From Basidiobolus meristosporus CBS 931.73 (lineage: Eukaryota; Fungi; Basidiobolomycota), in assembly GCA_002104905.1 (NCBI GenBank), contig MCFE01000484.1:3858-67857 (forward strand): a stretch of DNA of 64,000 bases, given 5' to 3'. A program made the translations under genes and the position numbers. Below are positions 1 through 54,346 of the stretch, one piece after another. The notes below the pieces were generated by a model, which was not told the origin of the DNA, made no database searches, and saw nothing but the letters and a program-made list of their open reading frames with translations. The stretch's first letter is position 1, and each line of letters starts with the position of its first letter.

Positions 1-2340
1 CTTTCAAGCAATCACAGGTGATAGGAAAATGTATTTGGCATGCAAAATAATTAGTCAATCACTAGACTTGAACTTCATTTTAATTGGCTGCCGCTATGAG
101 TAAGTATCCGCTGATTATCTCAATGAAATATTGGTTCATGCAATACTTTTGATGATTTTTTATAGGTAAGGACTTAAGACGTTTTTATCTAGTACGTTGA
201 GGACACTTGATTTACTCTCTTATCATCCAGCATTGCGTTGAATGCTGTTTACTAGTATTCATCCAATAACAACAAGCGAAGATTTTTCACCCGACCGCAT
301 ACATATTTTGATAGAATAGCTTGAATATTATAGGTTTATTTCAACCACCAGTTGCTCTGGTTCAACACTTCAGCCCAGAAGTATCATATCTACAACCCAT
401 GTCCAAGCGTCTAAACATGTGCCTAAGTCTTGGGATTGTTACATTCAATACATCCAATACCTGAATCTATTCGCTGAGAATCGCAATTGCAATCGCGCAA
501 GATAGTGAGCATTTCAGGCCAATGTCCAACTGAGAAAAATTATGCGCATGTTACACATGTGATGTGAAGTTTTCTTACGCCGCCATTTTCATACTCAAAC
601 TGACACACCAAAGTAAGAATACTATCTTACCTCAATGCTGAGAACTAAACGACTAGTGTCACGCATTCGGATTCAAAGGTGGCACAAAGCACTTGATATA
701 GCGATGAAGAATGCAATGTCGGGTAGAAAATCCAGTGATTAAAATAGCAGGTTACATCGAACAATAGATATACTTCTCTCCGTTTACTGATTGATGTGAT
801 ACAAACATTTACCCGAGACTAATGGGCCAATCTTGTCAGGACTGGTTGGTTATCTTGAAATAACAATTTTACATGCATTCAAATAGATTCAAATTTTATT
901 TCTTCAATCGTGTATTGTATTTGAACTTTTCCATGGACCAAATGGTTGGAGCATAGCGGGCATCCTCTTTGTCATTAGTAAACGAGACCAGACCTATCAT
1001 TGGGTGGATGGTTGCTTTTAGAATAGAATGTTTATTTTCGGCAATGCTCCCGTGAGTACAGATAAAAAAGCCTGCAGATTTTTCACCCTTAGATACCAAA
1101 TGGCCTTGCCACGGATCTTACTTGCATCGATGTTCTAGCCAAAGCCTCGCACGACAACATCATTACATTCCATGTCAGCAAACAAGTAACACCAGCCTCC
1201 GTATTTGTCAAATTACGACAAAGGCTTGCCTTCTTAACCACCCATTTAACAAGGTTTTGAGAATGTCACACCCGATAATATCCGGCTGGATTCACTGAGT
1301 GCCCATTTCAGGGCCTATACAATCCACAGCAAACCCGTCAACTCCTTTCGCACACACGCCGTACCAAGAGTTGAGATTCGTTCAATTGCACATTATACCA
1401 ATGGGCGCCGTGCAGATCTCCTACAACATTAGGGGATTTGGCTACTGAGTGAAAATTATCCCACCTTTTCTCTTGGAAATTGGTGCATCTACAGTTTGAT
1501 GTTGTTACGACTGAACTTTGAAGAATTATGTATATAGAATGTTCCCGCTCTTTACTCCTAGGAAAGGCATAAATTATGAGATGTAGTGCACTGTTCGTAT
1601 GTCCTTCGGGACCATAGGATCTGTCAAGTTTGTCATTCCAACAACCCTGCAAGGACAGTTTGTACATTCTAACCGCTTGACTACTATTTACCAATTGAAA
1701 CTAAAATGGAGTTTAACCCTAAGCGTCATTCCTCAACATCTCTATCGCGTGTGCATGACTTGTGAATAGCTGCTACCAGACACTCTTATTACATAAGATT
1801 CCACAACAATGTGAACGCTGCTTGTCCCAGTATTGATAGAGGACTCAATGCCAAGTACCATGTTGGTAATACAAGCACAACAGAGTAAACCAAACAGAAA
1901 CAAGCTTGGCTAACTATTCTTACAGAATCAATATTGCCTTGTCTCTGTTTAACTAAAATTCAGAACTTTGTCCGTGGTGATAGTATGAAGTATTGAAGTA
2001 AAACATGGGATAGCCATCAAAGACACCAACGAACCTCAGATAATTTGTATAATCTTTTTTCTCATTCGTACAATGGTTAAAAATATCTTCAAAAACTTTT
2101 TCGTCATCAGTGAAGATTCGGCAACCGACGGTCATATCCATGAAGATCTTACTGTCCTTACAGTCATGAAGTTACAAACATGCTTTAGCATGTAAGCCAC
2201 CACTGAGTGAACAATATGGCGATGTCGAATAGTACAGCTATCAAGCGTAGAATATTCTTTGGATCGAAGAAACCAAAATACCTCTCCACGCTCAAAATTC
2301 TGTAGATCACTAAAGATGAACACATGTAACAGAAATACAT

Positions 2341-3392
2341 TGCCTAAATATGGCAATGGTCGACCCATGACACTATCTAGAAATAGAGTGCCGATCCACG
2401 ACAAGATGACTTCTCCGTATATGGTAGGATCCTTGAAATCCCTCTCGATCTGAGAAGGTGAGCCAGATCCAAGTTGATTGGATTGAAAGTTGTGGAAGTC
2501 CCCTACCCAAGATTCCTTCACTTGTCGAGGATAGCGATCGAATCCCAATCGCCATTTGGTTCGGCCACAGACTCTAGGCCTGAAATGGTAAGAGAGTTTG
2601 AATCCTTTGTAAATTGGTCTGCCCTTCCTCGGTTTTCCTCAGCTTTCCTCGGCTATATATTACGAGCCTCATGCCAAGGATCCAGCATCTTCATAACAGC
2701 TCAACAATCCAGTATGGTCAAGATCTCTTCTATCTTTGCTGGTGTCACTGTCGCTGCTGCTGGCCTTTTGGGCCTGGCTGTCCAGGCACTCCCTGCCTCA
2801 ACCACGCCCAGCACTACCCCAAGTCAGACTAGCACTACAGAGGTGTCTGGACCCCATGTCAAGCTAGCCGCTCTGTCTGAGCTCGACAACGCCTGCTCAC
2901 TACAGTTCCGCTTCGATAACGGTCAGTGCACAGACTGGGCTGATGCCCGCTACTACCAACTTACTTGCCACCACACTCAGTGGTGGGGGAATGCCAAGAC
3001 TTGGCCCGCAAGTGCTCGCAACACCGATGGCTGGGTTGTCTCCAACGAGCCACGAGTCCCCTCCATCATCGCCATCCAGCCTGGATACCAAGGGTGTGAC
3101 TCCTATGGCCACGTCGCAGTCGTCGAGAGCATCAACGATGATGGAAGTGTTTACACCAGCAACTGGAACTACATTGAGAATGGACGCGGCGGTCCCTACA
3201 TCACCACATACGTCAACTTCTGGCCCGGAGAAGGGGTCTCCTTCATCTGGTATGAATAGGAGAGATACCCAACAATGGAATATACCATTCAGCAATGCCG
3301 GCATATACCCAACAGAGTATTTACCCAGTAGTGTCATCAATTCCCCGATAAATAAATACTAAAATAGTAAAGTAATACGTTTTGCCAGTGTG
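2341..3392 (+). repeat. 1052-bp direct duplication, copy 1 (carries CHAP gene with promoter and 3' UTR)
   Basis: Matches 4361..5412 (offset 2020) at all but 7 positions in a line-by-line comparison; flanks are unrelated. Confidence 0.97.
2714..3259 (+). CDS. Secreted CHAP-domain protein (putative peptidoglycan amidase/endopeptidase), copy 1, 181 aa, intronless
   Basis: Likely start MVKISSIFAGVTVAAAGLLGLAVQA (signal peptide), then an S/T/P linker, then CHAP motifs GQCTDWA (Cys), WGNAKTW, GHVAVVE (His) and SNWNY; TATA-like TATATAT about 55 bp upstream and AATAAA at about 3350. Confidence 0.85.
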   Translation: MVKISSIFAGVTVAAAGLLGLAVQALPASTTPSTTPSQTSTTEVSGPHVKLAALSELDNACSLQFRFDNGQCTDWADARYYQLTCHHTQWWGNAKTWPASARNTDGWVVSNEPRVPSIIAIQPGYQGCDSYGHVAVVESINDDGSVYTSNWNYIENGRGGPYITTYVNFWPGEGVSFIWYE

Positions 3393-4360
3393 TTGTCAAA
3401 AAATGACTGCCTACATGATTACAGGCATCCAATAAGCAATTTCACTAGAATTTGAGATTGAATGGTATGCTATCTGCAGCAGTGGGAAACGATAGGGGTA
3501 ACCGTGATCTAGCATAACTGTTTGAGTGAAAGGGTGAGGTACTTGAAGGTAGGTAGGTAGATAGTGATCTACTTCTCTGCCAATCATGGTCAATAATCGT
3601 GGTGATGCGGAAGGGATAAGCGTAATTTATCAGGAATGCCGGTGTTCCATACCATTTGGTTCTGGTCTACACACGTTGAAAAGATATTCTGTTTAGAATC
3701 CAACTTGGCTATGCCTGCTTTGATCCTTTTTTGATGGTCATATCACTCAGCAGCATGCGTTATGGTTTTAAACGTCAAAAGAATCGAGGTGGCAATGAGT
3801 GACTAGAGAAGTGTTCCCTCATCACTCATCAATCTATTGAGCTGATATTTTTCGTACTCTTCACTGAGGATTAATTGATTACGCCTTGACTTGGTGCGAA
3901 CATCAACGTACGTATATGCTAACCACAAAATAAGTCACGACTTCATAATAATTTTCCCGTTTGAAGCTTACTTGTGTCGCTATTTTTGAACACTTCACCA
4001 CTATGGGTAAGAGATAGTGATCGAAAGGCTCCGTCTTCGAATTCCACTCGGATGAAATGAACCACTTCTAATCTGTCAGTCATCATTCTCATAGCCTGAT
4101 AGTAAGCCTGAGCTACCAATGAGAACTCCATACCCGAATTGCATAGGGCTTTGGAGCCTCTATATTCATAGTCTAGACCTGAACCCAAGTTCCACAATGT
4201 AAGCTATTCGACTTGTTGAAATGCAGCTCTCAACAAGTATGAGGCTTGAGTAGTCTTCTATCAAGAATAGCAAGGACTGTGAGCTGCTTGGTGTGGGTGA
4301 GGGGAAAGGATGTTCCTTAATCGGAAGTACATATCTAGGTATGTACTATCTTGACTTCCG

Positions 4361-5412
4361 TGCCTAAATATGGCAATGGTCAACCCATGACACTATCTAG
4401 AAATAGAGTGCCGATCTACGACAAGATGACTTCTCCGTATATGGTAGGATCCTTGAAATCCCTCTCGATCTGAGAAGGTGAGCCAGATCCAAGTTGATTG
4501 GATTGAAAGTTGTGGAAGTCCCCTACCCAAGATTCCTTCACTTGTCGAGGATAGCGATCGAATCCCAATCGCCATTCGGTTCGGCCACAGACTCTAGGCC
4601 TGAAATGGTAAGAGAGTTTGAATCCTTTGTAAATTGGTCTGCCCTTCCTCGGTTTTCCTCAGCTTTCCTCGGCTATATATTACGAGCCTCATGCCAAGGA
4701 TCCAGCATCTTCATAACAGCTCAACAATCCAGTATGGTCAAGATCTCTTCTATCTTTGCTGGTGTCACTGTCGCTGCTGCTGGCCTTTTGGGCCTGGCTG
4801 TCCAGGCACTCCCTGCCTCAACCACGCCCAGCACTACCCCAAGTCAGACTAGCACTACAGAGGTGTCTGGACCCCATGTCAAGCTAGCCGCTCTGTCTGA
4901 GCTCGACAACGCCTGCTCACTACAGTTCCGCTTCGATAACGGTCAGTGCACAGACTGGGCTGATGCCCGCTACTACCAACTTACTTGCCACCACACTCAG
5001 TGGTGGGGGAATGCCAAGACTTGGCCCGCAAGTGCTCGCAACACCGATGGCTGGGTTGTCTCCAACGAGCCACGAGTCCCCTCCATCATCGCCATCCAGC
5101 CTGGATACCAAGGGTGTGACTCCTATGGCCATGTCGCAGTCGTCGAGAGTATCAACGATGATGGAAGTGTTTACACCAGCAACTGGAACTACATTGAGAA
5201 TGGACGCGGCGGTCCCTACATCACCACATACGTCAACTTCTGGCCCGGAGAAGGGGTCTCCTTCATCTGGTATGAATAGGAGAGATACCCAACAATGAAA
5301 TATACCATTCAGCAATGCCGGCATATACCCAACAGAGTATTTACCCAGTAGTGTCATCAATTCCCCGATAAATAAATACTAAAATAGCAAAGTAATACGT
5401 TTTGCCAGTGTG
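4361..5412 (+). repeat. 1052-bp direct duplication, copy 2
   Basis: Near-identical to 2341..3392. Confidence 0.97.
4734..5279 (+). CDS. Secreted CHAP-domain protein, copy 2 (identical protein)
   Basis: Same ORF as 2714..3259 with only two synonymous changes (CAC/CAT, AGC/AGT). Confidence 0.85.
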   Translation: MVKISSIFAGVTVAAAGLLGLAVQALPASTTPSTTPSQTSTTEVSGPHVKLAALSELDNACSLQFRFDNGQCTDWADARYYQLTCHHTQWWGNAKTWPASARNTDGWVVSNEPRVPSIIAIQPGYQGCDSYGHVAVVESINDDGSVYTSNWNYIENGRGGPYITTYVNFWPGEGVSFIWYE

Positions 5413-5467
5413 ATCCGTCTGACTTATTCAAATTAGAATATCAGTTTAGTGCTAAGATTTGCAGTTC

Positions 5468-6240
5468 TCATAAAAGATTCTCAAGGTGAATGAATACACA
5501 TCTTCCACACCTTCCTCCAACGCTTTTTTTGACGTGAAATAGCCCGTTGCAAATCCCTAACCCTAAGTAGCACTGTATATGGCAATAGTCAACAAGAATG
5601 CGCATCTTGCTGTGAATGATTGGAAAACAAGTTGAAGGTGATGAATGTTTAATCGTAGTTGGCATGCAATATACTCTAGGCGAACCCTGCTAGTGAGATT
5701 GCCGAATTCCTTCCAGGGCCAATGCCTGTAAAGTCTGTGATAAGTTGTCCTGATCAACAGAGGAGTTTCCATTACTTGTAGAAGCAGCATCACTCTTGGG
5801 GATTAGAAGATCCCCTAATAGATCTGGTAATGCGGTTAGAAGGGGCGTCACATACAGAATATTCACCAAACTATATACCTTTAGATTTTTTGTCCTCCAC
5901 CTTCTTGACTTCCGATAGCTCAAGCGCTGTTTCGGACAGCTTGATTTTCAGCGTTGGATGCTTTTTGAAAGTGATTTGCCCACCCCATAGCCAGGTTGGA
6001 ATTTCCTTCGGAATGCTGATTTCTGAAGTGAACCGCTCGATAAATTCTGTTTCTTCCGAGCCTACCACTCCATCTCTCAGGTACCTGCACATGAAACGGT
6101 TGGTAGAAGCATCCAAGGCAGGTTTAAGCTATCTGTTTACCTCGCATATTCGGTCAAAGCTGATGGCACGCTGTAGAATTGCAGCTTGCGTAAACACATG
6201 ACCACGACACCAGTAACCACTGAACCATCAATACAATGAA
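5468..6240 (-). pseudogene. Possible decayed gene or TE remnant of unknown family
   Basis: Protein-like fragments (5871..6116, 5690..5923, 5468..5665) chain together across stops and one frameshift; no family recognised. Confidence 0.25.
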
Positions 6241-7102: not shown

Positions 7103-9783
7103 ATGTCCTCTAACCCTACGTTTGGCACGCCTTTGATTCAAACACCCCTTGGATCTTCCGCGATACCTATCATCGCTCCTACCGAAGAGAACCAGGGCCA
7201 GAAAGAGGCAAAACGTCAGTGGTTACCTTTCAAATTGATTAGTGCTATTTGTTCGTGAATCTAACTCCCTTGATTAGCAAAGGCACCTTCCAGCACTCCT
7301 ACCACTCCAAACACAAAGTCACGCACTTGTCGTAACGTGATTATTCATGGGTACTGCAGATACGAAGGAAAAGGCTGCGAGTTTAATCATGATCTTAACG
7401 TATGTTTTCCAACAAACCGTATATAAACAACCGGTGTATTAACCGCGGAACCTCCCCATCTAGTCCAATGCGCCGACTCCCGTTACCTCGCCCGAATCGT
7501 ATAGCTCTTTCGTTGCCTTCTCACCAGGCTTCATCTGATCTAACCAATGTTTTTGGTGATAGAAAGTCGAAACTTAGAATAACCTCACCGGCCTTCAATC
7601 CCACGGGAGCCCTTACCTCGGCCCTGAAATTTAACTCGCCAGTAGGTAGGGAATAGCTTGATGTTGCCGGCCATAGCGGTGACACACATCTAACCTAATA
7701 TGTTGCACTCTACGTAGCCGTAGTTGAGAAGACACCAGTCAACTAACGGACCCAGTGGCGTTGACTTTGAGACAGGGTATTGGACACCGTGGTCGATTTC
7801 ACTTTCCAGTCATTAATTATCCATCTTCTCACGGAATAGAGCGCCTTACTATGCTCAGCCTGCCAATTCGGGCTATCATCCCTCAAACTCGAGTGTAAAT
7901 CACCTGTCGGCCGACTTTGGCTCGATGGACCTGGACAACGGCATGGTAAGTGCGCGTGCACCAATGTGAATCAACATCATCACCCAGCCAGCTTACCAAC
8001 TACCATGCATGCAACGCTAGTCGGCGAACTACCCTCCGCTGGAGCTTCGATACCACCTGTACACCACACCACTTCCACACATCACCAATCTTCCGCCCAA
8101 CCGCAAGACAATCCACTCGTTTTTCATGTCGGATAATTTACGCGAGGAGCTGCAGAGAAAGAACGAAGCGTCAATTCAATACTTGGATCGTATGTGTGGT
8201 TTATTTAGACTGACGGACTGCTCTCGCGTCTTGTTAATTCTCTCCAGCAGCACAAGACTCAGCACTACCTGCGGAGGTGCATGTGTACCATTCCCTGTAT
8301 CCTCTAGACAGCCCCAATCAGGCCAAATCTACGCAGGCCTTTGGGTACCCTACCTCGGTGTACAAAGCAGCAAGCAGCATCGATGGGAAGCTCTACGTGC
8401 TTCGTCGAATCGAAGGTTCCTTTCTTTCCTGACCACCTTGATAGAGAGTGGCTAACCCCTTTCGGACGCTAGGCTACCGTTTGACGAATGAGGCAGCAAT
8501 GTCGACCATCGAAAACTGGCGCAAGATAAGCCATCCGAACATCGTGTCTGTGCGCGAGGCGTTCACCACCAAAGCATTTGGCGATCACTGTACGTAGTTC
8601 CATCTAACCGACGGCCTTGCAGTAAACTGATTGATATGTTTAGCTTTGGTGTTTGTCTACGACTACCACCCGTGCTCCACCACACTGGCCGATCAGTACC
8701 TCCATCCCAACGCAATCCTCCCTTCAGCGAGGAACTCCCTCAGCGCGGACAACATCACCGAAGTCAAGTTTTGGAGCTTTGTTGTGCAGATAACCTCGGC
8801 ACTCCGTACGCTACATGCAGGTGGCCTGGCAGCCTGTATCCTGGACCCAACCAAAATATTGATTACCGGAAAGAACAGGTACACTCCACCAAGTCTCCCG
8901 GGAAGCGCGTGCTAACTCAGTGTGTCCTTTAGGATTCGTCTCAACTGTTGTGGGATCTACGACATGCTTTCATACGCCAGCACCAGAAACACCGCCCACT
9001 ACCAGGTAGGTCAACCCCATGCCGACCCACCTCCCCACACGCTCACGTAGTCCACTTTCTAGCAAGAGGATTTGCTCCAGTTCGGCCAGCTGCTGACGTG
9101 CTTGGCATGCAACTCCTCCAGCGCGCTCGCCAACCTTCCCAAGTCCATCGACTTCATTGCCCGCCACTATTCTCCAGACGTCAAGAATCTGATCCTCTAC
9201 CTCCTGAGCAAACCCTCCACGACCAAGAACATCGATGACATCATCGGGATGCTGGGGCCCAAGATGCTGCTGGAGCTGAACCGCACCCACTAGTAAGCCA
9301 ACCCTTGAATCGAGGCATCCCGATGCACGCATACTAACCCCGCAACCCGCTAGCTACAACGACTTTTTGGAAAACGAGCTGTCCACGGAGCTGGAGAACG
9401 GCCGGATTGCTCGACTGATGATGAAGTTGGGCTTCATCAATGAAAGGCCAGAGTACGTCATATCCGCGCATTGTATCGCCGCACATTAACTGAGAGAAAC
9501 TTTGACATTGACTAGATTCGATCTGGATCCCAGTTGGTCCGAAACCGGAGACCGCTATTTGATCAAGCTGTTCCGAGACTATGTCTTCCATCAGGTGGAT
9601 GAGAACGGGAACCCGGTGTTGGATATCGCCCACGTTCTGTCCTGCCTGAACAAGCTGGATGCCGGTCTGGAGGAGAAGATCATGCTGATGTCGCGGGACG
9701 AGCAGTCTTGTTTGATTGTGAGCTACAAGGAGCTGAAGGATTGCGTCCAGCAGGCGTTCTCCGACCTCACCAGACGCCATTGA
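7103..9783 (+). CDS. PAN3: PAN2-PAN3 deadenylase subunit PAN3 (multi-exon)
   Basis: Exon 1 7103..7214 splices in phase to 7278; CCCH finger [22 protein letters not shown]; pseudokinase segments ([22 protein letters not shown]); C-terminal [30 protein letters not shown]. Confidence 0.95.
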
Positions 9784-9900
9784 AGATTTTTCCGTTCTAA
9801 CCTTCATGTAATTAAGAAAACACGCCAACATTTCATGGAAATATTTGGTAAAAACCCCCAAAAACATCAATAAATCTTCGGAAGATAGCAATTATCCGCA

Positions 9901-10165
9901 CGGCCAGGAGTCCATCTCGGCTCTAGCGGCAAAGATGGCCCCCACTCCTGTGGAATTCCTTGTTGGAGTGGTTTTGGTGGAATAAGACCCTTAAATGGGG
10001 GCGTCCACCAATGGCCGACCGCACCTGGAATGGGTTTGTTTGGACCATCTCCAATTTGTTACTCCTTGTCGATGTCTAGGCCGGCATCGATTGCGTTATC
10101 GGAAGGCCATACCATTGTGTGGGATCGGTGAACGGTGATCCGTGGAATCTCCTCCCTGATCCCTG
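9901..10165. ncRNA. Candidate structured RNA of unknown family
   Basis: Intergenic GC-rich block with several hairpins: CAGGAGT/ACTCCTG with CCATCT/AGATGG, TTGGTGGA/TCCACCAA, TCGATGTC/GGCATCGA, GGATC/GATCC; no diagnostic snRNA, SRP or RNase P motif recognised. Confidence 0.25.
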
Positions 10166-11239
10166 GTTGCTAACGTAAAATACGGAAACCTTTGAGGTAA
10201 ATATGTGCTACGCATCTACTGACTAATCTTAAATAAGCTAGCAACTTAATTCCCATTTACATTTACCTTGAACTTACACACCAGATCGACCCAAGAATGC
10301 ACTTGTCATGTTAAATATCACCGGATCAACCAAGTGAAGAACAGTCGGAAGGCTTATGTGCTTCACATACCTCACCGACCATGAGCCTTCTCTAGTCGCC
10401 GGCTGCTCTCAGCAAGAAGCAAGGCGAATGTGCGCAAACTGGTTTTGCTTGTTATTACAACTCGTTGATACTCCACGTGGTTTCCTGGATTTGACTGGAT
10501 TACAAATCCATTCTTTTAGGAAGCGCTGACAGATGAATTGCATATATGGCTAAACAAGCTTCCTAACCCAGCAACAACCCAAATCCACATTGATGGCTAC
10601 GGATATGGCCAAGCATCCCCCAGAGATCAGAGTCAGTATACGGAAAGTTTACCCGCGGGTCAAAAATTACCAAATGCCCATCGAATTGGGAACAATGGTC
10701 GCTTTTGGCTATATTAAGGAGAGAAACAAGCATATCCAGAGGCCAAACCGGGCTAAACAATTAAAATGTGAGTGGTGGCCCAGGTTCGAGGCTATGGTGA
10801 TGGTAAAACAATATAGTTGGGAATTCTCCTCATTTACCAGAATTAGCAACTGGTGCAAAGCAAGAGCAAGCACAAGTAGCAGGGCAAGTGCAGGAGCAAG
10901 TGCAAGCGTAACTGAAAGCGTAACTGAAAGCGAAAGGGCCCGTGGAAATGCAAAGGTCTACACCGCACCGCTACGTCGCAAGGCCATCGTTCTTGGGCAA
11001 CCAGTCCATGCGTATTGCGAATAAAGTTCGCATCAGCGTGGATTCATATCTCGACCTGATCAGGCAATGATTCTTTAGGGCAGAAACTTCTAAGACCATT
11101 CGATAGCACATGATTTGCTAGGTGCGGCGGGCCAATGACCATCCGGCGGTGGCTCCTACATAAGGCGGGCGGCTGGCGATGAACGTCGCATTCCTTCACC
11201 TTCTGTACATTTATTCAAAGATTAGATTCATGAGCATTG

Positions 11240-12256
11240 ATGGCATTACTAATACATGACACCAACGATCTTGAGCAGATCGAACTCGCCATCACTCCAT
11301 ACTTTCGGATCATTTCGATGGGGATTTTAGTCATAGTGATCGTGTGTGCGATCATGATTTGGATTTGGCGAAGACAGCTCACCCATCGAACCTCCTACAA
11401 CCTCGCCTTCTGGAGTCTCGTATGCATTCTTATTTACCACGCGATGGGCTTTTTCAAGACCACGTCCACCCAGCTCTCCATCTGCACTGTAGTCCCCTTC
11501 TTCGAAAACGTCGCCAAGCTATCGGCCGTCTTCATCACTGGATGCATTGCGTACAACCTCCGGCGAGTCTTCATCAAGAAAATGTCGGTGCCCCCCAAGC
11601 TGGTCCGTGGCTATATCCCTCTCTCCATCCTCTTCGCCGTCATCGTCAGCATCCCCGGGCTGGTCTACTCGCTGGACCGGGACATCTGCTGGCTCAAGGA
11701 CAAATCCAACATCTGGCCCATGATCTATTGGTGGATCACCTCCGAGGTGTGGATGCTCATTGTGCTGACCTACTGCCTGGTCATCGTGATTGTGGTCTTC
11801 AGAATCATTCATCAAGGCAATCGCGAAATCAAGCGACTGCTGAGGAGACCAGATGGAAGCGATGGCCAGCCGCCAGTGGTGCGCCAACGTAGCAGGCAAC
11901 TCAATCAGGCTGCGGTGCGCATCATCATGTATCCTATAGTACCCATCCTCAGCTTCACCCCCAGCCTGGTCACCTTCACCATCCAGATGATCCAGTTGGT
12001 TGGCCACCACATGCACAGCGCGCGTTATCAGGAGATCATCCAAAACTGCACTCTGGCTGCCGATTTCATCAGCTCTTGGACCGGGATATTCGCCGGGATC
12101 GCGTTCATGTGGGACCCGGTCGTGACCACGGTTATTATGGAAATCAGGGTCAAATATGGCTGGGCCGACGGTCCCGAGGCCAACAATCAAAAGCCGGAAA
12201 TACAAATAGACGAAAGCGGTACCTTCCGGATTAGTAGCACCATGCCTATTATGTAA
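11240..12256 (+). CDS. Seven-transmembrane GPCR-like receptor (cAMP-receptor/Git3-like fold), intronless
   Basis: 338-aa ORF with about 7 hydrophobic segments, TM3-end IAYNL, ECL2 ICWL, basic third intracellular loop, TM7 GIFAGIAFMWDP. Confidence 0.75.
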   Translation: MALLIHDTNDLEQIELAITPYFRIISMGILVIVIVCAIMIWIWRRQLTHRTSYNLAFWSLVCILIYHAMGFFKTTSTQLSICTVVPFFENVAKLSAVFITGCIAYNLRRVFIKKMSVPPKLVRGYIPLSILFAVIVSIPGLVYSLDRDICWLKDKSNIWPMIYWWITSEVWMLIVLTYCLVIVIVVFRIIHQGNREIKRLLRRPDGSDGQPPVVRQRSRQLNQAAVRIIMYPIVPILSFTPSLVTFTIQMIQLVGHHMHSARYQEIIQNCTLAADFISSWTGIFAGIAFMWDPVVTTVIMEIRVKYGWADGPEANNQKPEIQIDESGTFRISSTMPIM

Positions 12257-12430
12257 GTATGGAACTGCCTTCTTCCCTGTAAATATCATCACCCATCCCA
12301 ACCCCAATATACATAAAACTGTACAATTAATAAATCGCTCGAGCTTTATTTGCTTAAGTTACGTAAGTTTATTGTATATATCGCCCTCGTCACGTAGATT
12401 AGCGTATTTACACACTTCTATTTACATTTT

Positions 12431-12906
12431 TCATGGCGCCGGCACTGGATTCGGTTTGGTTACTGGTCGTTGTACGAACACCCTGACTTGTCTCTCCATG
12501 TGGACCTTTGCCAGCTGGTAATCTCTCGAATACTCGGCATCGCCGTAAGCGCGTAGTGTGTAGTGGTCCTCAGGGCTGTCGGCGGGGAAAGCCCATTGAA
12601 AGTCGCCAGCCCCCTGGCTGATCAATTGGGTGATGTTTTGAAAAAGGCTCGACCCATTCTTACGCAAGATATCCAATGCCACGCTGGAGCTATGAAGAGA
12701 TCCCGAGATTTCTATTTCCAAGGAGATGTTAAAGGGCCGCCCGGCCACGATGACCGAGTAGGGCAGAGGCTTGGTTATCACGATTTGATCTACACATACG
12801 AAGTTAGATGGGCTCCCGCCAAAGAAGCTACCTGCAGGCTCGTACCTCCGGTTACCCCAGCAATCACCGAGATGTAGGTCAGCGCGAGAACTCTGAGCCG
12901 ATTCAT
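12431..12906 (-). CDS. Small secreted hypothetical protein (about 140 aa; possibly Kre9/Knh1-like beta-sandwich)
   Basis: MNRLRVLALTYISVIAGVTG signal-like exon; GT..CTAAC..AG intron 12790..12845 restores frame to DQIVITKPLPYSVIVAGRPFNISL. Confidence 0.65.
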
Positions 12907-14104
12907 TACGTTTAGGTTAGGGTAATCAGGTATTGGGACAATTTTAAGGTTAATAAACGTGGAATAAATCTCCGTGTCTGCCATAAACATGGAATCCCCG
13001 GCATTGTATGCCTTATACTATAACCATTGTCCCTGTACGTCTATTCAAAATTGTGTTTAAAATTTTCACGAATTTCATTGTCTAGATTATTGAAAAAGTT
13101 TGCTTATCTTGATTTCCACGACCCATGAGATATCTTCGGAGAAAAAAATCCTTTATCAGGGGACATGATTGGTGGTATCTCCCCATCACCCATGTCTAAG
13201 AATAGCATAAAATGGATGCACCCAGTGTTCTGTCTCTCACCTTCAGTACATTGGTCTGCATATTGCATATGGTAAGTGACATTTCCTCAGTTCGTTGGTT
13301 CCTTTCCTTATGATGGTGTAATTTGCGTTTGAAAGGCAACACTCCGCGGTGTCTTGCCGGACACCACATGCGGGTTTGCTCACATGAGACTACTTTTTTG
13401 CTGAAGATCAACCTACAATTCCAATCCAGAATTTTCTATCCGCAACCTAACACTAACCGACTTATTTCAGTCTGTAGGACGCATGCAGCGAAAGTCCCTC
13501 ATCTGTAAATATGAATGTAAGTACTGACTCCGACTTTCATACGAAGTCAAGCGTCCGTCCAGTGATTAAAAAAATTCGCTACCCTGAATTTCCATGTGGA
13601 TCTCTTATTTATCACCAAGATCTCTGAGGACAGACCTTGACTTCCCATTCTCTATCTTTCAATTCATTTCACTTACCCACTATTTCCTAGGATTGCCAGG
13701 GGTTGTTTGTAAATAAAATAAATGAAATTCAACCATATCACGTGTCCTTTCGCTTTTGTACTCTGTAATTTAACAAACAAATCCATATTGGGAATGAGGC
13801 GAATGGTGTAGACGCCAAGAGACGGGATTGTTTTGTGGTTTTGAGGCGATTTCATGCAAATCCCACGAACTCGGAGTTCTAAATATTTAAGCTATTCAAA
13901 CGTGATGGTGGACTGATGAGCAAGGGGAATGTAGGAGTGCTTGGGATGTATCAAATTAGTATGTAGGAGCGACATCCCACCGAGGGTATAAATAAATTGA
14001 CTTGCACGCCGGACCAAGGGATCTACATCCGACACATTGAATCAAACCGTCCTATAAATATATTTCTCTTCGCCAGTATCCCTAATCTTGTACATTGTTG
14101 AGCC

Positions 14105-15013
14105 ATGGCATTTCGCTCGTATGATGATGAACAGCTATTCTATTTCCCCTATGAGATTGGGAAGACAAAGCAGAACATGGATTCGGTGGTGTATTCAGGT
14201 GAATACTCCCCTCATCGTTGTGTTATATGAACATGATTTAATTGTGCCAACTTGTAGAACAATATTCCACCGAGGTTCCGGGATTCGCCTTTGATCCACT
14301 ATCTCTACCAGCGGAATTCTTCCCTGCGGATATGGGCTATTCCTCACTGCCAGAAGCCTCTCCAGAGTCATCCACCGTGTCCGAGACATTCATGTCCGAC
14401 TTCTCCGAATACACGCAAGAGATTTTGGACCAGCTGTCTACTGCTCCCACAAAAAGGAAGAGAAGCGAGCCTGAGGTTCTGAAAGAAACGCTGGAGGAGC
14501 TCTCGGGGAACGGCCCTTCCAGGTAAGCAGGATTGAAGATACCTGCTCCTCAACAGCACTAAAGCCCACTTTACCACAGCCCTAGCCCACCCGGGTCGCT
14601 ATCAAACGCCGAGATCAGACGGCAGATCCACATACAATCGGAGCAAAAGCGCAGAGCCCAAATCAAGGACGGCTTCGAGGAGTTGAAGTGCCACCTCCCA
14701 AACTGTAGCAACAAGAAGATCAGCAAAGCCGCCATACTTTACAAAAGTAAGTCTCAGGCGTGTGCTGATGGCGCTCCAGCTGCTTGCTAACCTTGCACCA
14801 CTCCACAGCCGTCCAGTATCTGCAGCACCTCAAGAACATCCAGATCGCTTTGATCGGCCAGCTTGAGCATATGGGGGCCGAGAACGAACGTCTTAAACAG
14901 TAAGTGGCTTGATGATCGGCACGGCGTCAGTTACTAAGTCTCTTCGGAACAGGTTTTGTGACGCAGCCCTTCAGAAGCAGAGCTTAGAAAAGGTCTACTC
15001 GATCGGACTCTGA
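14105..15013 (+). CDS. bHLH-leucine zipper transcription factor, Mlx/Max-like (5 exons)
   Basis: RQIHIQSEQKRRAQIKDGFEELKCHLP..KISKAAILYK..VQYLQHLK; canonical introns; exon 1/2 junction checked in phase (14198/14258). Confidence 0.88.
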
Positions 15014-15266
15014 ACCCCCCCCTTCAACCACAGCACCGGGTCGCTTCCCAAGCCCGCCTCATTCAACTCTGCATATACCACGTTGACCGCACGTCTACGT
15101 ACTTCCCATGAATATAACCTCATGTCCATCAGTACATAATCCATGTCGAGCCCATGCATTTTGGTACCTATAGACCGCATTTCATAAATAAACAACTCAT
15201 CCGATGAGGGGCAGGGGCTTTATTAATATATACATGAGATGCCTGGCCGGGGGATATACATTGGAG

Positions 15267-16485
15267 CTAGAGATCAGCAAGGCCTCTGGCAATCACCTCG
15301 TACGTCAATATGGTCAAAGCACTGGCCGGGATGGTGCGTAGCAGATTGGTGGGCATTCCTTTGTAGAAGGCCGACCACCCCTCCTCCAGGTAGATGGTCG
15401 TGATGGTGTGCCGAATTCCCGCATAGCGAAATGGCCGGGCGGTTTGGTTCTGAAGCCGGGTCCGGATGACCTCGTGCGGATACGTGGCGACGCTTGCGGC
15501 CATTTTGGAGGTGGCTGATGCAACGAGGATCGAGGAGGTGGGAAGATTGCCATCCTCTGGTTCTGGGAACCCGTTAGTTTGCTTGTTCGGCTCCAATGAG
15601 CATTGGGTAACACTTACTAAGGTAGATCTTCAGCTGCTCGTACAGAGGGAATTGAACGGCCACATGCAGCAGGCCAAAGAGACTGGGGACGAGTCCCTTG
15701 TAAAAACCATGGATCCCCTCCTCCACCCAGATGGTCTTGAATGCGTGGAGAGTGTTGTTGTAATGATACGACGTGGCCGAGGATTGGGTCTAGGGGTGCA
15801 GCAGAATGTAAGTTTGCGTTCGCACGGTTGATCATTGCTGGTACAGTACCATGAACCGAGTCTTAATCACCCACAACGGGTTGGTTGCCGTGGAGCTAAC
15901 GGCACCAGCCCCCATCGCAGAGATCATATGAACCAGGGGCTGACTGTCGCCGACTAGTGTAGAAGCAGATCAATTATTCGCAGTCCAAAGCAACAAAGGT
16001 GGCCTAGGCGGCTTACTTTTGAGAGGAAGCTCTTGCTTCAGATAGTCGTAGACGGTGAAATAAATCGCCCACGTCGGTAGATAGCCGAATATCGTGGGCC
16101 CGAGGCCTCGGTACCAACCGCGGAGTCCGTTCTCCGCCCATATTCTCTTCAGTGTACCTGGCAGCAGTTAAGGAGGCAAACATCAATACACTAGATTCCA
16201 AAGGTATTTAGAATTTTGGAATGTTCTACATATGCGTCAATACTCACTAAAGGTTCCTCGGTAATGGCCTGCGTCGTAGCGACCCTGGTTCTGCAACTTC
16301 GTCTTGACCACATCCAGCGGACAGGTCACAATCGAAGCGACGCAACCTGCCCCAGCGCCTGCTAGCGAGTTTCTAAGATTGTCCGAACGCCTGCAACAAG
16401 TACAAGAGCCGTTTAGCAATGCAACGTACCCACCTGGACTCGTGAATTACCTCAGCTTATCGCGAACATTCTCCAAAGGACCCAT
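15267..16485 (-). CDS. NDT1: Mitochondrial carrier, NAD+ transporter (Yia6/Ndt1-like), multi-exon
   Basis: Carrier signatures [11 protein letters not shown] and [11 protein letters not shown]; [25 protein letters not shown]; spliced start [12 protein letters not shown]. Confidence 0.8.
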
Positions 16486-16917
16486 TCAAAATAGATTTGC
16501 TAGTTGGTGAGCTAAAGAGAGAGTGGTTGACTGACGTGGAAAATTGGTCAGCAAACAATCTTGGTCACCAAGTTCCTGAGAAGAATCAGAATAAATGAGA
16601 ATCATGCTGCTGATATCACGGAGGTGGGGTGGATGATCGTAGCTTCAGGTAATCAACCAACTCTGTTGACCTTTTTGGGGGTCAGTTTCCATATTGGTGC
16701 ATCGATTAGCCCTCGCTGCTCGGCATATGATAGCTAACTATGCTAAACTACACACAATAGAGGCACCGAATGCACTAATTGCGCAAAGTGTAATCATTGA
16801 ACAGGGTGAAGATCTCAAATACTTTTATTCATGAATGATTAATAGCCTGAGATGGAGCGGATCATACTTAACTGTATGATAAGGAGAAAGCGTCTTGGCG
16901 GCAGATGGCCAGTTTGC

Positions 16918-17556
16918 TTAGTCTAGAGAGATGTTGCATCAGTACACATGACCCAATATCAAGTATCGTCTTTGGAGCACTTACTCTTCTTCTTGGAGAC
17001 ACCAACGGTTCTTCCTCTACGGCCGGTGGTCTTGGTATGTTGACCACGGACACGGAGACCCCAGTAGTGACGAAGACCACGATGGGCACGGATCTTCTTC
17101 ATACGCTCCAAATCCTCACGGAACTTGTTGTCGAGTCCATTGGCAAGAACTTGGGTGTATTTACCATCAACGATATCCTTTTGTCTGTTAAGGAACCACT
17201 TGGGGATCTTGTACTGAAGGGGGTTTTGGATGATGGTGACAATACGTTCCAATTCTTCGTTGGTGAGTTCACCGGCGCGCTTGGTGAGGTCGATATCGGC
17301 CTTCTTGCAAACCATGGTGGAGTAACGTCTACCAACACCCTTGATGGAGGTCAAGGCGAAGACGACCTTGGTTCTACCGTCAATGTTGGTATTGAGGAGA
17401 CGAAGAATATGCTGGAATTGGTTCTTATCGGGAACGACGAGAGACTAGCAATGGACAGCACGTTAGCTACGGTGAATATCATTTAGCCGACCACGATCCA
17501 TCCATCGGAGTGGTCTCGCGGGGGCCTGCTTCACTTGTTGATTGATTTCTTACCAT
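16918..17556 (-). CDS. RPS18: 40S ribosomal protein S18 (uS13); ATG-only first coding exon and 5-nt last exon
   Basis: [58 protein letters not shown]. Confidence 0.98.
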
Positions 17557-36274: not shown

Positions 36275-39200
36275 TGTTGAAATATTGGACTATTTGGTAT
36301 TGTTCTGCTGCTAAAAATTTACTTAACAATTCTGGACTAGTCTTGGTCACTGTGGGACTAATTTACAGCTCTCGCTTTGCCTCTTTCTTCAGATCTATGA
36401 TCTTACAATTATTCCCCTATAGTCAGGATCAAATTAGTACTAATACTAACAATTATGTACTAACCATGAAACTGTTACAGAATGCTCCTGAATATTGAGA
36501 AACACTCCTTACTTAGTGTTACAACTGTATTACTTCTACAAAGGTATAAATACTGAGCTTCTTTATTAATAAGCAACAGTTCAACTATTATCACCATTTC
36601 TTGATAAGTTCCTTATATCCAAATCACTTCTTAAATTGCAACAGGTTATGAGCCCCAATTGCCTTAATCTATCCTAAAGATGACTTATACCAGCAAACAG
36701 AACAACACAAACATCTTCCCTGTAAAGGAGAGGTTTAATGAAAAGAACTACAGACTTTGGAGAATCAAGATGCAGATCCACCTTGAGGAAAGGAAGCTTT
36801 GGAATGTAGTAACAGGAAAAGAAGTTGAGCCCAAAGGAACAGCAGAAGAAGTGGGGAAGTTTCAAGAGAAGGAGAGAAAGGCCTTTAATGCCATATGTAT
36901 CAATGTGCAAGATTCCTTCATTGGACAAATCCATGCCTCAAATACTGCCAAAGCAGCATGGGAATCCTTAGAGAAGATCTTTAGGGCAAAGTCAGTATCA
37001 AGCAAGCTTTATTTGAAACAAAAGTTCTTCAACATGAGGAAGAAGCCAGATGATGACATGCTACAACTTATTACCAAAATGAAGACACTTGCAGAATAAC
37101 TTTACAGTATTAATACTGGTGTAGATGATGAAGAAAAGATACTCTGTCTGCTTTGCAGCCTACCAGACAAGTATGAGCCACTCATACTTTCTTTTGAAAG
37201 CAGAGAAGACAACTTGACTTTAGACTATGTCAAAGGAAGACTTCTCCATGAAGAACTCAGACGTAATTATCAAGCAGAGAAAATGAAGATAATGCTTTAT
37301 TCAGTCCAGAAAGGCACTCAGAAAAGAAGGAAAAACAACAAAACCAAAGAAAACCTGGTTGCAGCATCTATTGTAAAAAGCCAGGACACTGGGCAAGAGA
37401 ATGCAAGAAGTAACAAGCAGACAAAAAACAGAAACTAGAGCAGGCCAGCCATATAACTACTGATGAACAGTTATTTGTAACCGTACAAGAGAGTGCAAGT
37501 AACCAAAGTAATGAATGGTATATTGACTCTGGAGTTTCACAGCATATTTATGGTATAAAGGAGTGGTTCAGCAACTCAAAAACTATTCCAGTAAGAAAGG
37601 TTTATCTGTGAGATAACTCTGCTCTGGAAGCTACAGCAAGTGGGTCTATACAACTATATATGAGCAATAGCTCAGGGGCAACTACAGCAAGACTCACTGA
37701 CATACTTTATGTACCTGGAATAGCTAAGAACTTACTCTCAGTCAGTAAAGCAACTGCTCAGGGACTGGAATTTGTTTTTACTAAGATGAGCTGCTCAATA
37801 TTGAGTGAGAATGGACAAAAATTAGCTTTGGGAATCAGAGATCACAATACACACAAGTTACAATGCAAGATCATTGTACCTGAGTATGTCAACATTGCTG
37901 AAACTGATGAAACTAACTGGGAGATGTGGCATAGGAGGCTAGGACACATTGGGGAACAGAAAATGAGCCAATTGGTGAAAAATCAGCTTGTTTTGGGCCT
38001 AGAATACTCAATTCCAATCAAATCAAATGTTTGTAAGGGATGTTCATATGGCAAACAAGCTAGGCAACATTTCAAGAGCTCAGAAGGCATCAATACCACC
38101 AAGATATTGTCTATTGTACACTCAGACATATGTGGCCCCATGAGAACACTGTCCTCTGGAGCCAGGAGATACTCTATGACGTCTATTGATGCCAAAACAA
38201 GATATACATGGGTGTACTGCCTCAAAACAAAGGATGAAGCTTTAGAGACGTTTAAGCACTTCAAGAACATGGCAGAAATACAAACTGGGTGTAAATTGAA
38301 GGTACTACAAAGTGACAATGGAGGAGAATACAGCTCAAAGGAGTTTGCAAAATACTGCTTGTCTACTGGTATACTTCAACAGACCACTGTTCCTCATACT
38401 CCACAGCAAAATGGAGTAGCAGAACGTGCAAATAGAGCAATAGTAGAGATGGGAAGATCTATGCTACATGATAAGGGAATGGACTACAAGTTTTGGGCTG
38501 AATCTGTTGCTACCACTGTATACATCAAGAACAGATGCCCAACAACAGCACTACGTGATTCTACACCCTTTGAAGCATATACAAGCAAAAAACCAGATCT
38601 CCAGCACCTCAAGATCTTGGGCAGTGATGTTTTTGATCACATCCGCAACAAAAAAAAAAAAAAAAACGCCAAAAGTTGGAAGCAAAGAGTAGGAAAGGGA
38701 TCTTTCTTGGGTATTGTGAAGATACTAAAGGGTATAGAGTATATGATGGCAAAATTCACAAGCTGATCAAGAGCAGGGACATTGTATTTGAGGAGAATTC
38801 AGATCAGAAAGCCACAGATATTATTGGCCAGCTGCCGGATGATGCAATCAACACTAATGAAGAAGATACATACCAAATCCAGACAGATACAGAAGATACT
38901 TCTACCAGTTCCAGATCAGAATAGATTATCCCAGTTAGGAGATCTACCAGAATAAGAAATCCTCCTGGATCCTGGTGGCAGACATCTAATGATCATGAAG
39001 AAGCTTATCTTGCCTTACGTGCCAAACCTCAGAATCTGGAACAGGCAATGCAAAGTCCAGATGCTACTAGGTGGCAACAAGCAATGCAGGAGGAGTACCA
39101 ATCACTGATCAAGGCAAAAATGTGGGAACTGGTAGATTTACTAAATGGGACAAAGCCAATAGGATGTAGATGGGTCTACAAGATCAAGATAGCCTCAAAT

Positions 39201-44000: not shown

Positions 44001-46531
44001 TTATTAAAAACCAATTGTAGGCCATCATACTGCCAATATAATGCAATCAGAGTCTTGCTGTGAGGCCATCAAAATACTGTCAAGTTTCTTGCCATATAAG
44101 ACAATTGGATGTCCTGGCTGGATGGATCCATTTTAAATAGTTGTAGAGCGCTAAAAGACTGCAACAATACCATGCAATATTGTAACAGCACCAATTAAAT
44201 TTTTTCTAGTTTTATCTCATTATTCCATTGTAAAATTAGCAAATTACCATTATGATCCTGTTGTAAGATCATTAGGAGGGTCACTAATTCCAAGCTGCTG
44301 GTATTGTGATGGTCTATTAACAGGATCCTGACAGCTGATTGAGATTAGATCCACCCAGGACCAAACTATTTCTCAGAGGGATGCCCTTGTATTAAGAAGT
44401 TAAGCAGCCCCAATGAGGTGCAAGATAGTGCCATGATTTTCTGTGACATTTTACAAGCCACAGGGCACATTTTAAGAATACCTGGAATGTTCTGGTGTTA
44501 CAAGTCTTGGAATAAGAGTTGTAGAGGAATAGGGAGTTTAGCTAGTATTGTATACACTAAAACTTGAACTGATCTTTATTGAGGTTCCAGCAGCTTCTTA
44601 TATACATTTTGCCAGATCAATTGCTGACTAATTATATTTCCTAATGTAGGTTGTGCCTGATGACTCATTTGATTGCATCATCATCACCCAATAATATCCC
44701 ACTTAATATATCTATTTCTGTCTGATAAGGATCTGCTGATTCATTTGCTGACTAATGTTACCAATATGATAGATAATACTAATATACTGATATCGTAAAC
44801 ATATAACTAATTGATTTGACTAAAAACTGATCTAACTTTAACACTCAAGCAGCAGACCATAACATTCTCCCCCACTAAAGCTGAGAGGGTTCTCCTGAAT
44901 CTCTTTTCTTGTAATACCAATATCTTGATGGTTCAGTATTGTCAGCAAGTCTTGCAAGCTTGAGTCTGTCTCTATGAACTAAATCTTCCCAGATATTCCC
45001 TTGTTTATCCACTAGTTGGTACGCTGCAAATGGACATTTTCTGATGATCTTGATTGGTCCTGTCCATTGTGGCTCAAACTTCTTCCAAGTGTTGTTTCTT
45101 AACAATACAAAGTTCCCAACTGTCAATGCTTCTGGTGCTATAGTCTTATCAAATCTCTGCTTCATCTTTTCTGCACTTTGAGATACTTTGGCCTGTGCCT
45201 CTTGTCATCTTCCTTCCAATTGCTGGTGTCTACTGGGCTGATTAAGTTCATCTTCTAAGGCATCTGTGAGCTTGGGTTGTGTGAGATCTCCTGGAACCCT
45301 TGGTTCACATCCATACACTAAGTAAAATGGTGATTGTTGGGTAGTGTTGTGCACTCTAACTCTGCAGGCAAAAAGTGCTTGATCTTTATACGCATCCCAT
45401 CTACTGACAGCTCCATTTGCATACTTGGTCAGCATTTTTCCAAATAATCCATTAAAGCATTCAGTGATTCCATTAGTTCTGGGGTGATATGCCAAGGTTT
45501 TCAAGTGTTTAATCTGCTGCATTTCCAGGTAAGCCTCTAATGTCTTTGCCATGAAGTTTGCTCCTCTATCAGATAAGATCTCCACAGGGCATCCAAACTT
45601 CATCAGGATCTCATGGTAAATGAAACTTGCAACTTCTTGTTCACCGGCTATTGGTACAGCTTTAGCAACTGGCCATTTAGTGGCATGATCAATTGCTACT
45701 ATGATCCAACAATTGCATTTCCTGGTGGTTGGCAGTCTTCTAATAGAGTCAATTCCCCATCTCTCAAATGGACTTACAGGCTCCAAAGGGAAGAGCTTGG
45801 CAATTCTTTGTGGCTGGCCTTGATTGATTTGGCAGTTTTGGCATGTTTTCACTAGCTTCTCAATATCTTGTTTCATTCTGGGCCACCATGCTCTGGCTTT
45901 CACAAGGCTATAGGTTCCTTTAATTCCAAGATGTCCATATCCATTGTGTAGCTTATGTATTAAATCCAGGCAAGCAACATAAGGACAATAGGCAATAGGG
46001 CTTCCATCAACAATTTGGTAGAGTGTTTCATCCTGTACAACAAATTTGCTGGCTTCATCCCGGATTATCTTCTTTATCTCTTCATCCACCTTGTTAGGAA
46101 TGGCTTGGTCCTCCAAGTATTGTGGTAATAAGCTAGGCCAATCTGATTCATGCACCAAGTTGAGTTGTGCCACTTATTCTAGTCTTGATAAGGCATCAGC
46201 AACCGTGTTGTTTTTCCCAGGGCAGTAGACAATCTCCAAGTCAAATTGCTGGATGTATTCACTCCATCTTGTCATTCTTCTAGAGAGTACCTTCTGAGTA
46301 AATTTATACTTGAGGGAGGCATGATCAGACTTTACAGTGCATTTGACTCCTTCAATATAGCATCTCCATGTCTTCAGGCAGTGTATTATAGCAAGCATCT
46401 CCTTCTCATGCAGAGTATAGTTTTGTTCTGCTAAGTTCAGTATCTTGGACTCAAAGGCAAATGGATAGTCCTTTCCCTTGTGTTCTTGGCTTAGTACTCT
46501 ACCAATTGCATAATCTGGAGCATCTGTGCAC

Positions 46532-53561: not shown

Positions 53562-54346
53562 GATCCAGGGGGTCCATTCTTTCAATTTGTCCAAGTAGAC
53601 ATCTGTACTCATAGATGTACTCTTGAACCATTCCTTTCTGTGTGAGTGTCTTTAACTTCCTTCTTAGTAGTCTCTGCTGGTGTGGAGATTCAAAAGCATC
53701 CTGAATTTCCAACACAAATTCATCCCAGGTAGAGATTGTAGACCATCCCATCATAGTGGCTGACCTGATCTTGTTGTGGTACCACTGTAAAGCTGCATCT
53801 GCCAGGTAAGAAGTTGCATAATGCAACTTGCTTTCTGGAGCAATTTCTTTAGCCTTAAAAGCTTCCTCAATCTGAAAGAGCCAAGTTCCCAGGTTTTCAT
53901 TGACTCTACCATGGTACTGGTTGATCTTCACACTAAAGTTGCTCTTGACAGGGCTTTGCTGGCTCTGGGCCATGGTAGTCATTCCTTGCTGCTGTTGGCT
54001 GAGGATCTGGAGTAACTGTTGCTGTCGGGCCAGGATTTGCTGCATGGCATTCTTCCATTCTTGATTGTCAAACATCTTGAGGGTGGTTTCTTCTTTCTTC
54101 AGGAGGGAGGTTTCTGGTTATTGCTGCTACCAATGTTATAAGTCTTGGTATAAGAGTTGTAGAGGAATAGGGAGTTTAGCTAGTATTGTATTCCCTAAAA
54201 CTTAAACTGATATTTATTGAGGCTCCAGCAGCTCCTTATATACATTTTGCCAGATCAATTGCTGATTAATTCTATTTCCTAATGTAGGTTGTAGCTGATG
54301 ACTCATTTGACTGCATCATCATCACCCAGTAAGATCCTACTTAATA

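Follow-up and report, generated by a model that had tools for sequence, protein, structure and literature searches.

How does a fungus come to carry, in two neighbouring copies, a gene for what appears to be a secreted enzyme directed at the bacterial cell wall? To our knowledge, fungi have no peptidoglycan, and the presence of such genes raises the question of both their origin and their possible role. The DNA analysed here is a stretch of 64,000 nucleotides from contig MCFE01000484.1 of Basidiobolus meristosporus CBS 931.73 (hereafter, the window), and the element in question is a pair of CHAP genes on its forward strand, copy 1 at 2714-3259 and copy 2 at 4734-5279, each of which is a single-exon open reading frame (ORF) of 546 nt (181 codons plus the stop). 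The two proteins are 100% identical, and only two substitutions separate the two coding sequences (CDSs), both of them synonymous and at the third position of a codon (codon 133, at 3112 and 5132, and codon 139, at 3130 and 5150). The single-exon structure is also that of the 181-aa gene models of B. meristosporus, and the alignment of the protein to bacterial CHAP domains is uninterrupted, as expected of an intronless gene. The interpretation that we consider probable is that the two genes encode tandem secreted CHAP hydrolases, derived from a single old transfer from a Ktedonobacteria-like donor, belonging to an expanded family and probably acting on bacteria.

The Pfam profile PF05257 (CHAP) matches residues 68-150 of the protein (E 8.4e-17, with a score of 61.9 bits where the cut-off is 26), and the motifs QCTDWA (with Cys72), WGNAKTW and GHVAVVE (with His133) are all present; the partial NCBIfam matches and the sequence matches in the PDB are to peptidoglycan hydrolases and amidases (staphylococcal CHAP, PcsB, the hub protein of phage phi812). 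In the AlphaFold model, built on an alignment of 49 sequences, residues 60-181 have a predicted local distance difference test score (pLDDT) of 88-98 and residues 1-55 are disordered; Cys72 opens helix 71-84 and His133 opens strand 133-140, as the CHAP family requires. Foldseek returned 16 matches at E<=1e-3, all of them CHAP domains of solved hydrolases, the best being 5t1q, 2k3a, 9eum, 4olk and 4csh (prob 1.0), among which are the S. aureus amidase CHAP, phage phi812, LysGH15 and LysK. In the alignment of 49 sequences from fungi and bacteria neither Cys72 nor Asn152 varies, and more than 90% retain His133. The assignment of the protein to the CHAP (MEROPS C51) cysteine peptidases/amidases, with their papain-like alpha+beta fold, is confirmed by the profile and fold matches; Cys72 would be the nucleophile and His133 the base. 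At the position of the catalytic His, a Tyr is found in one B. ranarum protein (P0024) and a Gln in one bacterial protein (P0092), and some members of the family may thus be inactive.

The catalytic domain (residues 58-181; 2885-3256, forward strand, delimited by alignments, AlphaFold and Foldseek) is preceded by two segments that together suggest export from a eukaryotic cell. The first is a predicted signal peptide (residues 1-25; 2714-2788, forward strand) with a Lys, a hydrophobic run of 20 residues and a VQA-LP junction that fits the -3/-1 rule for cleavage after VQA, the hydropathy over residues 1-25 being 1.7-1.9. The second is a linker of 32 residues (residues 26-57; 2789-2884, forward strand), 53% of which are Ser, Thr or Pro (S/T/P); it is disordered in the model (pLDDT 52-60) and is probably O-glycosylated, as in secreted fungal proteins. 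Compared with the staphylococcal and phage CHAP hydrolases (2k3a from S. saprophyticus, 5t1q, 4csh or CHAPK, 4olk, and 4cgk or PcsB), the window protein shares the fold, the positions of Cys and His and an Asn equivalent to Asn152. However, the identity is 19-32%, the window protein is made by a eukaryote and is devoid of a cell-wall-binding module (SH3b, LysM), and the position aligned to the staphylococcal Glu (P0053, P0054) is occupied by Asn150, and by N, D, A, G, S or T across the subfamily.

Where do the closest relatives of this protein occur? An exhaustive HMMER search over 1.84 billion representatives gave 1047 matches at E<=1e-3, most of them of unknown taxonomy; those scoring 146-202 bits all belong to Basidiobolus, after which the scores drop to about 122 bits, with bacterial proteins. 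When bacterial genomes were scanned with a single protein as query no matches were obtained, and a profile based on an alignment was needed. The profile-guided scan covered 185,579 prokaryotic species genomes, from which the best 77 loci were kept: 76 of them are labelled Ktedonobacteria or Chloroflexota, the other being a metagenome-assembled genome labelled as a proteobacterium, and the identities range from 40 to 61%. The carriers include Thermogemmatispora, Ktedonobacter, Dictyobacter, Thermosporothrix, Tengunoibacter and Ktedonospora, often with several loci per genome.

The likeness with the Ktedonobacteria proteins (e.g., that of Thermogemmatispora sp., P0040, and the paralogues of Ktedonobacter, Dictyobacter and Thermosporothrix) concerns the CHAP domain, with 50-61% identity over about 115 residues and with GQCT.WA, PSII.LQPG, YGHVA.VE..N.DGSV.TSN.N and a C-terminal PG.GV.F.W in both groups. 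The bacterial proteins differ in being 250-400 aa long and in their layout, in which an N-terminal tail is followed by a hydrophobic helix, a long linker and, at the C-terminus, the CHAP domain, whereas in the fungal ones the domain is preceded by a predicted signal peptide and a short S/T/P linker; moreover, where most bacterial sequences read GQCTYWA, the fungal ones read GQCT[D/E]WAD, with D/E replacing Y after GQCT. A further difference is represented by three additional cysteines, Cys61, Cys85 and Cys128 (2894-2896, 2966-2968 and 3095-3097), which the window protein has in common with the 13 Basidiobolus relatives closest to it; this set was found in no aligned bacterial relative and in no other aligned Basidiobolus paralogue, two of the latter having one extra Cys. 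Judging from the sequences, at least one disulfide among these residues is likely. Searches by protein names and in the literature found no characterised CHAP relative from Ktedonobacteria. The CHAP assignment and the bacterial affinity proposed in the first-pass annotation of the window, together with its two intronless ORFs encoding identical proteins, are borne out, the N-terminus looks like the signal peptide described there, and the nearest non-fungal relatives can now be placed in the Ktedonobacteria.

On the eukaryotic side, the named matches among the HMMER top 150 come from Basidiobolus, Entomophthora and Massospora only, plus one metagenome contig that looks eukaryotic. Entomophthora muscae has seven CHAP proteins (P0165, P0178, P0182, P0192, P0273, P0289 and P0290), encoded on contigs that measure between 145 kb and 1 Mb, and Massospora cicadina has one (P0096); a word search with P0165 retrieved E. 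muscae paralogues only, a result that has no bearing on other Entomophthorales. The metagenome contig (9 kb, 28% GC, from JGI metagenome 3300042649) carries two CHAP genes (1730-5466), one of them encoding P0181, with signal-like N-termini and long linkers rich in Q, N and P, adjoining an F-box/leucine-rich repeat (LRR) gene whose nearest Atlas clusters are eukaryotic and commonest in Mucoromycota or Chordata. The low GC content, the second CHAP gene and the F-box/LRR gene make the source of P0181 look eukaryotic, and the contig may come from a further fungal lineage possessing the CHAP family; its CHAP sequence groups with the Entomophthorales in the tree described below.

Phylogenetic trees were constructed with IQ-TREE (LG+C20+F+G4) on about 116 alignment columns. 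In the fuller tree, which includes eight Entomophthorales and two unassigned sequences, all 48 of the eukaryotic sequences fall in one clade (86/95; present in 90% of the bootstrap trees). This clade splits into Basidiobolus (73/74) and its sister, a group formed by the Entomophthorales plus the unassigned sequences, and its stem measures 0.44 substitutions per site. The Firmicute outgroup is placed among Dictyobacter paralogues and the eukaryotic clade, all of whose neighbours are Ktedonobacteria, within the Ktedonobacterial diversity, with backbone support values of 99/11 and 96/73. The occurrence of the CHAP family in Entomophthora and Massospora places the transfer before the split between Basidiobolus and Entomophthorales, and the best reading of these sequence data is one old transfer from a Ktedonobacteria-like donor to the common ancestor of the two. 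The tree that had been suggested as a check on horizontal gene transfer is in favour of it: under outgroup rooting the fungal clade does lie among Ktedonobacteria, although the support of the backbone is mixed. The idea of an acquisition that is recent or private to Basidiobolus has instead to be abandoned, in view of the family in E. muscae and M. cicadina, the single eukaryotic clade and the native composition of the genes.

The family is much larger in Basidiobolus than the locus alone would indicate. About 40 distinct CHAP proteins are encoded in two Basidiobolus assemblies (37 from a word search and three named later), with identities to the window protein down to 47%; the best protein match is a 181-aa protein of B. 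meristosporus with 86% identity, and no exact match was found in the database. In B. meristosporus CBS 931.73, contig MCFE01000090.1 harbors six CHAP genes in 9 kb (8220-17011), namely four near-identical 181-aa genes and, on the opposite strand, a 231-aa and a 185-aa gene, the whole array being flanked by a reverse-transcriptase gene and an eEF3-like gene. When the flanks of the window genes were compared with this array (nucleotide and tblastx), the similarity was confined to the CHAP units, the tblastx signal elsewhere being noise. The synonymous divergence (dS) is 0.016 between the two window copies and 0.016-0.08 within the MCFE01000090.1 array, and about 1.0 between the window genes and the nearest array genes, which points to homogenisation within arrays at both loci; the likeness of array copies may be due to repeated recent duplication or to gene conversion. 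For the same comparison between loci, the ratio of nonsynonymous to synonymous divergence (dN/dS) is 0.07-0.08, which reveals strong purifying selection on the CHAP protein. The two copies first reported at the locus are indeed there, but they understate a family of about 40 proteins that includes a six-gene array; similarly, the copies are near-identical, as expected if the dosage had recently been doubled, but gene conversion may account for this as well, and the same pattern is seen in the B. meristosporus array.

The CHAP pair is embedded in a fungal genome. A PAN3 pseudokinase exon (9502-9780, E 2.8e-46) and copia and Ty3 retrotransposons share the contig with it, which argues that the pair is stably integrated rather than a contaminant. 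The CHAP CDS has a GC content of 56% and a GC content at third codon positions (GC3) of 64%, the neighbouring native coding sequence having 52-53% and 72-74%, respectively; owing to this resemblance to native exons, the CHAP genes are not foreign by composition.

The probable history of such a family can be outlined as follows. The ancestor of Basidiobolus and the Entomophthorales would have acquired the CHAP domain once, from Ktedonobacteria (Chloroflexota) or a close bacterium, where the domain would have formed the C-terminal portion, outside the cell, of a protein anchored in the membrane. The bacterial cytoplasmic tail, transmembrane helix and linker would have given way to an S/T/P linker behind a signal peptide of eukaryotic type, and the gene would have taken on the native composition and grown to dozens of paralogues, often in tandem arrays. 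The protein would enter the endoplasmic reticulum, the signal peptide would be cut after Ala25, the linker would be glycosylated and an enzyme of about 155 residues would be released. Cys72, activated by His133 and oriented with the help of Asn152, might then attack an amide of peptidoglycan, either the bond between N-acetylmuramic acid and L-alanine (MurNAc-L-Ala) or a bond of the stem or cross-bridge, so that the walls of neighbouring bacteria would be weakened or lysed. The habitats of Basidiobolus, a fungus known to be associated with the gut of amphibians and reptiles, are dense in bacteria, and the payoff in herptile gut, dung, litter and similar bacteria-rich places might lie in competition, in feeding or in both. 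The export signal, the linker, the catalytic residues, the constraint, the many paralogues and the habitats all fit a bacteriolytic or peptidoglycan-digesting role, and it is from them that we infer secretion, the substrate, bacteriolysis and the ecological role. Since fungi themselves are without peptidoglycan, a large, conserved family of apparently secreted hydrolases of this type suggests a direct enzymatic attack on bacteria.

Some of the data weigh against the scenario of a single old transfer followed by use against bacteria. The eukaryotic clade is well but not fully supported, several of its members have long branches and the alignment has only 116 columns; in addition, in the tree without Entomophthorales, in which the Ktedonobacteria form one clade (98/100), the distant Firmicute outgroup (P0055, with a branch length >3) attaches weakly inside Basidiobolus. 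Constraining Basidiobolus to be monophyletic gave a tree of higher likelihood, and monophyly was not rejected (p-AU 0.605); because the constrained tree is the likelier one and the fuller sampling moved the root, we regard the placement of the outgroup inside Basidiobolus as a long-branch effect. Nevertheless, with such an unstable rooting the donor lineage, and even the direction of the transfer, rest partly on arguments of distribution. As for the function, the weak fold matches include CHAP amidases that do not act on peptidoglycan (glutathionylspermidine amidase, trypanothione synthetase), and the extra cysteines of the window's subclade are odd in number (three) and lie alongside the catalytic Cys72. 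These last two observations would also suit a different fate for the same domain, in which origin and fold are as proposed above and lysis was lost, the proteins trimming peptidoglycan fragments (for nutrition or signalling) or acting on peptides of the fungus or of its insect or amphibian host, or on gamma-glutamyl or isopeptide bonds. Such a re-purposing, which we hold to be rather unlikely, would also be in agreement with the replacement of the staphylococcal Glu by Asn or Asp in nearly all fungal members and with the retention of the family in E. muscae and M. cicadina, both of them obligate pathogens growing in the insect haemocoel. On the other hand, the closest characterised relatives by both sequence and fold are all cell-wall hydrolases, the layout of the protein appears to fit export, strong purifying selection has kept the Cys/His/Asn set, and many diverged paralogues suit the diversity of peptidoglycan cross-bridges better than one housekeeping substrate. 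Moreover, wall hydrolases transferred to other eukaryotes stayed antibacterial (PMC4241558; bioRxiv 10.1101/320382).

The remaining alternatives concern the origin of the genes. A recent transfer into Basidiobolus alone, with the Entomophthorales genes derived from separate events, might be suggested by the absence of introns, by the hundreds of bacterial-derived genes reported for Basidiobolus (PMC7466969) and by the false groupings that long branches such as those of the Entomophthorales can generate. We judge it very improbable: the eukaryotic sequences form one clade, in which Basidiobolus and Entomophthorales are reciprocally separate, as under vertical descent; the stem of this clade measures 0.44 substitutions per site, the composition is fully native, paralogues within the genus diverge to less than half identity with the window protein, and the GQCT[D/E]WAD signature is common to the fungal sequences. 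Even less credit can be given to a fungal origin of the subfamily, followed by its passage to an ancestor of the Ktedonobacteria, which would be the literal reading of the tree without Entomophthorales, with its Ktedonobacteria clade and its outgroup inside Basidiobolus. That placement, however, is the weakly supported one discussed above, less likely than the constrained tree and abandoned for a position among Ktedonobacteria with fuller sampling; besides, the more distant relatives whose source was identified are CHAP proteins of bacteria or phages, the substrate class occurs only in bacteria, and many genera of the bacterial class, with several paralogues per genome, have to be set against one fungal subphylum. 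Finally, an intronless ORF whose closest non-fungal matches are bacterial might simply be bacterial contamination, and the duplicate might be made by the assembly, but we attach almost no weight to either idea. Contamination is refuted by PAN3 and the long terminal repeat (LTR) retrotransposons on the same contig and by the related arrays on long contigs of two Basidiobolus assemblies, and it would also leave the eukaryotic type of the N-terminus and linker to be accounted for. The assembly artefact is refuted by seven differences between the copies and by an independent short-read contig that bridges the copies and the spacer.

A more elaborate version of the old-transfer scenario can be put forward tentatively, and we consider it doubtful. 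According to it, the diverged paralogue groups would constitute an antibacterial arsenal and the subclade of the window would in addition be controlled by redox conditions. The different groups of paralogues could be tuned to different peptidoglycan chemotypes and could shape the bacterial community of the herptile gut, while the enzymes with the extra cysteines might be inactive until they reach a reducing environment such as the gut.

The domestication of bacterial wall hydrolases by eukaryotes is a known type of event. The Dae amidases of ticks, which Chou and colleagues reportedly described in 2015, are said to be one such case. The GH25 lysozymes (Metcalf et al. 2014, PMC4241558) and the NlpC/P60 proteins of Trichomonas vaginalis (bioRxiv 10.1101/320382) are others. 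The CHAP genes resemble all three in that a bacterial domain appears to have been transferred, to have gained a secretion signal and to have been retained by selection; they differ in the family (CHAP/C51), in the Ktedonobacteria-like donor and in a far larger expansion, with dozens of paralogues in tandem arrays. In the same genus, Tabima et al. 2020, whose subject is secondary-metabolite genes, list 806 bacterial-derived candidates in B. meristosporus and give gut-associated phyla as the main sources (PMC7466969). The CHAP genes share with those transfers the recipient genus, the general lack of introns and the native composition described there; in contrast, the CHAP transfer is older than the genus. 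The main text of that article does not mention CHAP, lysozyme or amidase genes, and in the literature searched no paper was found linking CHAP genes with Basidiobolus or Entomophthorales. The Basidiobolus CHAP proteins are already in public databases under automatic names ("Peptidase C51 domain-containing protein"). The new details are therefore the CHAP family itself, the donor group and the scale of the expansion, and the case would add to the short list of domesticated wall hydrolases a CHAP-type example with an unusual donor (Ktedonobacteria-like soil bacteria). Being small and single-domain, the proteins should be easy to express and assay, and they could supply new lytic enzymes.

The duplicated unit at the locus exceeds the CDS in length. 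Repeat finding and an identity scan at offset 2020 delimit two direct copies of 1052 bp, at 2341-3392 and 4361-5412 on the forward strand, offset by 2020 bp and differing from each other at 7 positions; each embeds 373 bp 5' of the CDS and 133 bp 3' of it, besides the CDS. Between them lies a single-copy spacer of about 970 bp (3393-4360), unrelated to the repeat units, where identity at offset 2020 is at background level and where only short ORFs and no convincing gene were found. No further CHAP copy was detected by tblastn in the window, and on its left side no Cys-rich ORF was found in 1-2400. In both repeats, consensus matches point to candidate expression signals, that is, a TATA-like TATATATT at 2654-2661, 60 bp before the ATG (in copy 2 from 4674), and an AATAAA at 3351-3356, 92 nt past the stop and still within the repeat (in copy 2 from 5371), both on the forward strand; the start context of copy 1, CAGTATGG, has A at -3 and G at +4, this too being a pattern match.

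A short-read contig from the source sample spans 3363-4412 with 0 mismatches, and since it leads from the last part of copy 1 across the spacer into the beginning of copy 2, the long assembly cannot have created the two-copy arrangement. Among the short-read contigs of this sample, the one of the spacer has a k-mer depth of about 57, against about 112-119 for those of the flanks (1800-2340 and 5413-5900). Although the depth of a contig does not measure copy number, the two-copy form may be absent from some of the haplotypes or nuclei. Differences between these contigs and the window occur at 1870, 2034, 5564-5565, 5637 and 5758.

As for the other genes of the window, PAN3-like exons at 8631-9783 on the forward strand belong to a native gene of the eukaryote, located 4 kb downstream from CHAP copy 2. 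They are followed by an ORF of 339 aa (11237-12256, forward strand; GC3 72%) that has no Pfam match at 1e-3 but contains several hydrophobic segments and may encode a membrane protein. Transposons abound in the right half of the window: an uninterrupted copia polyprotein ORF of 1305 aa (gag, integrase, RVT_2) occupies 49238-53155 on the reverse strand, a second copia integrase piece lies at 37660-38766, and Ty3-type fragments are found at 45205-46173, 53428-54075 and 59814-60830.

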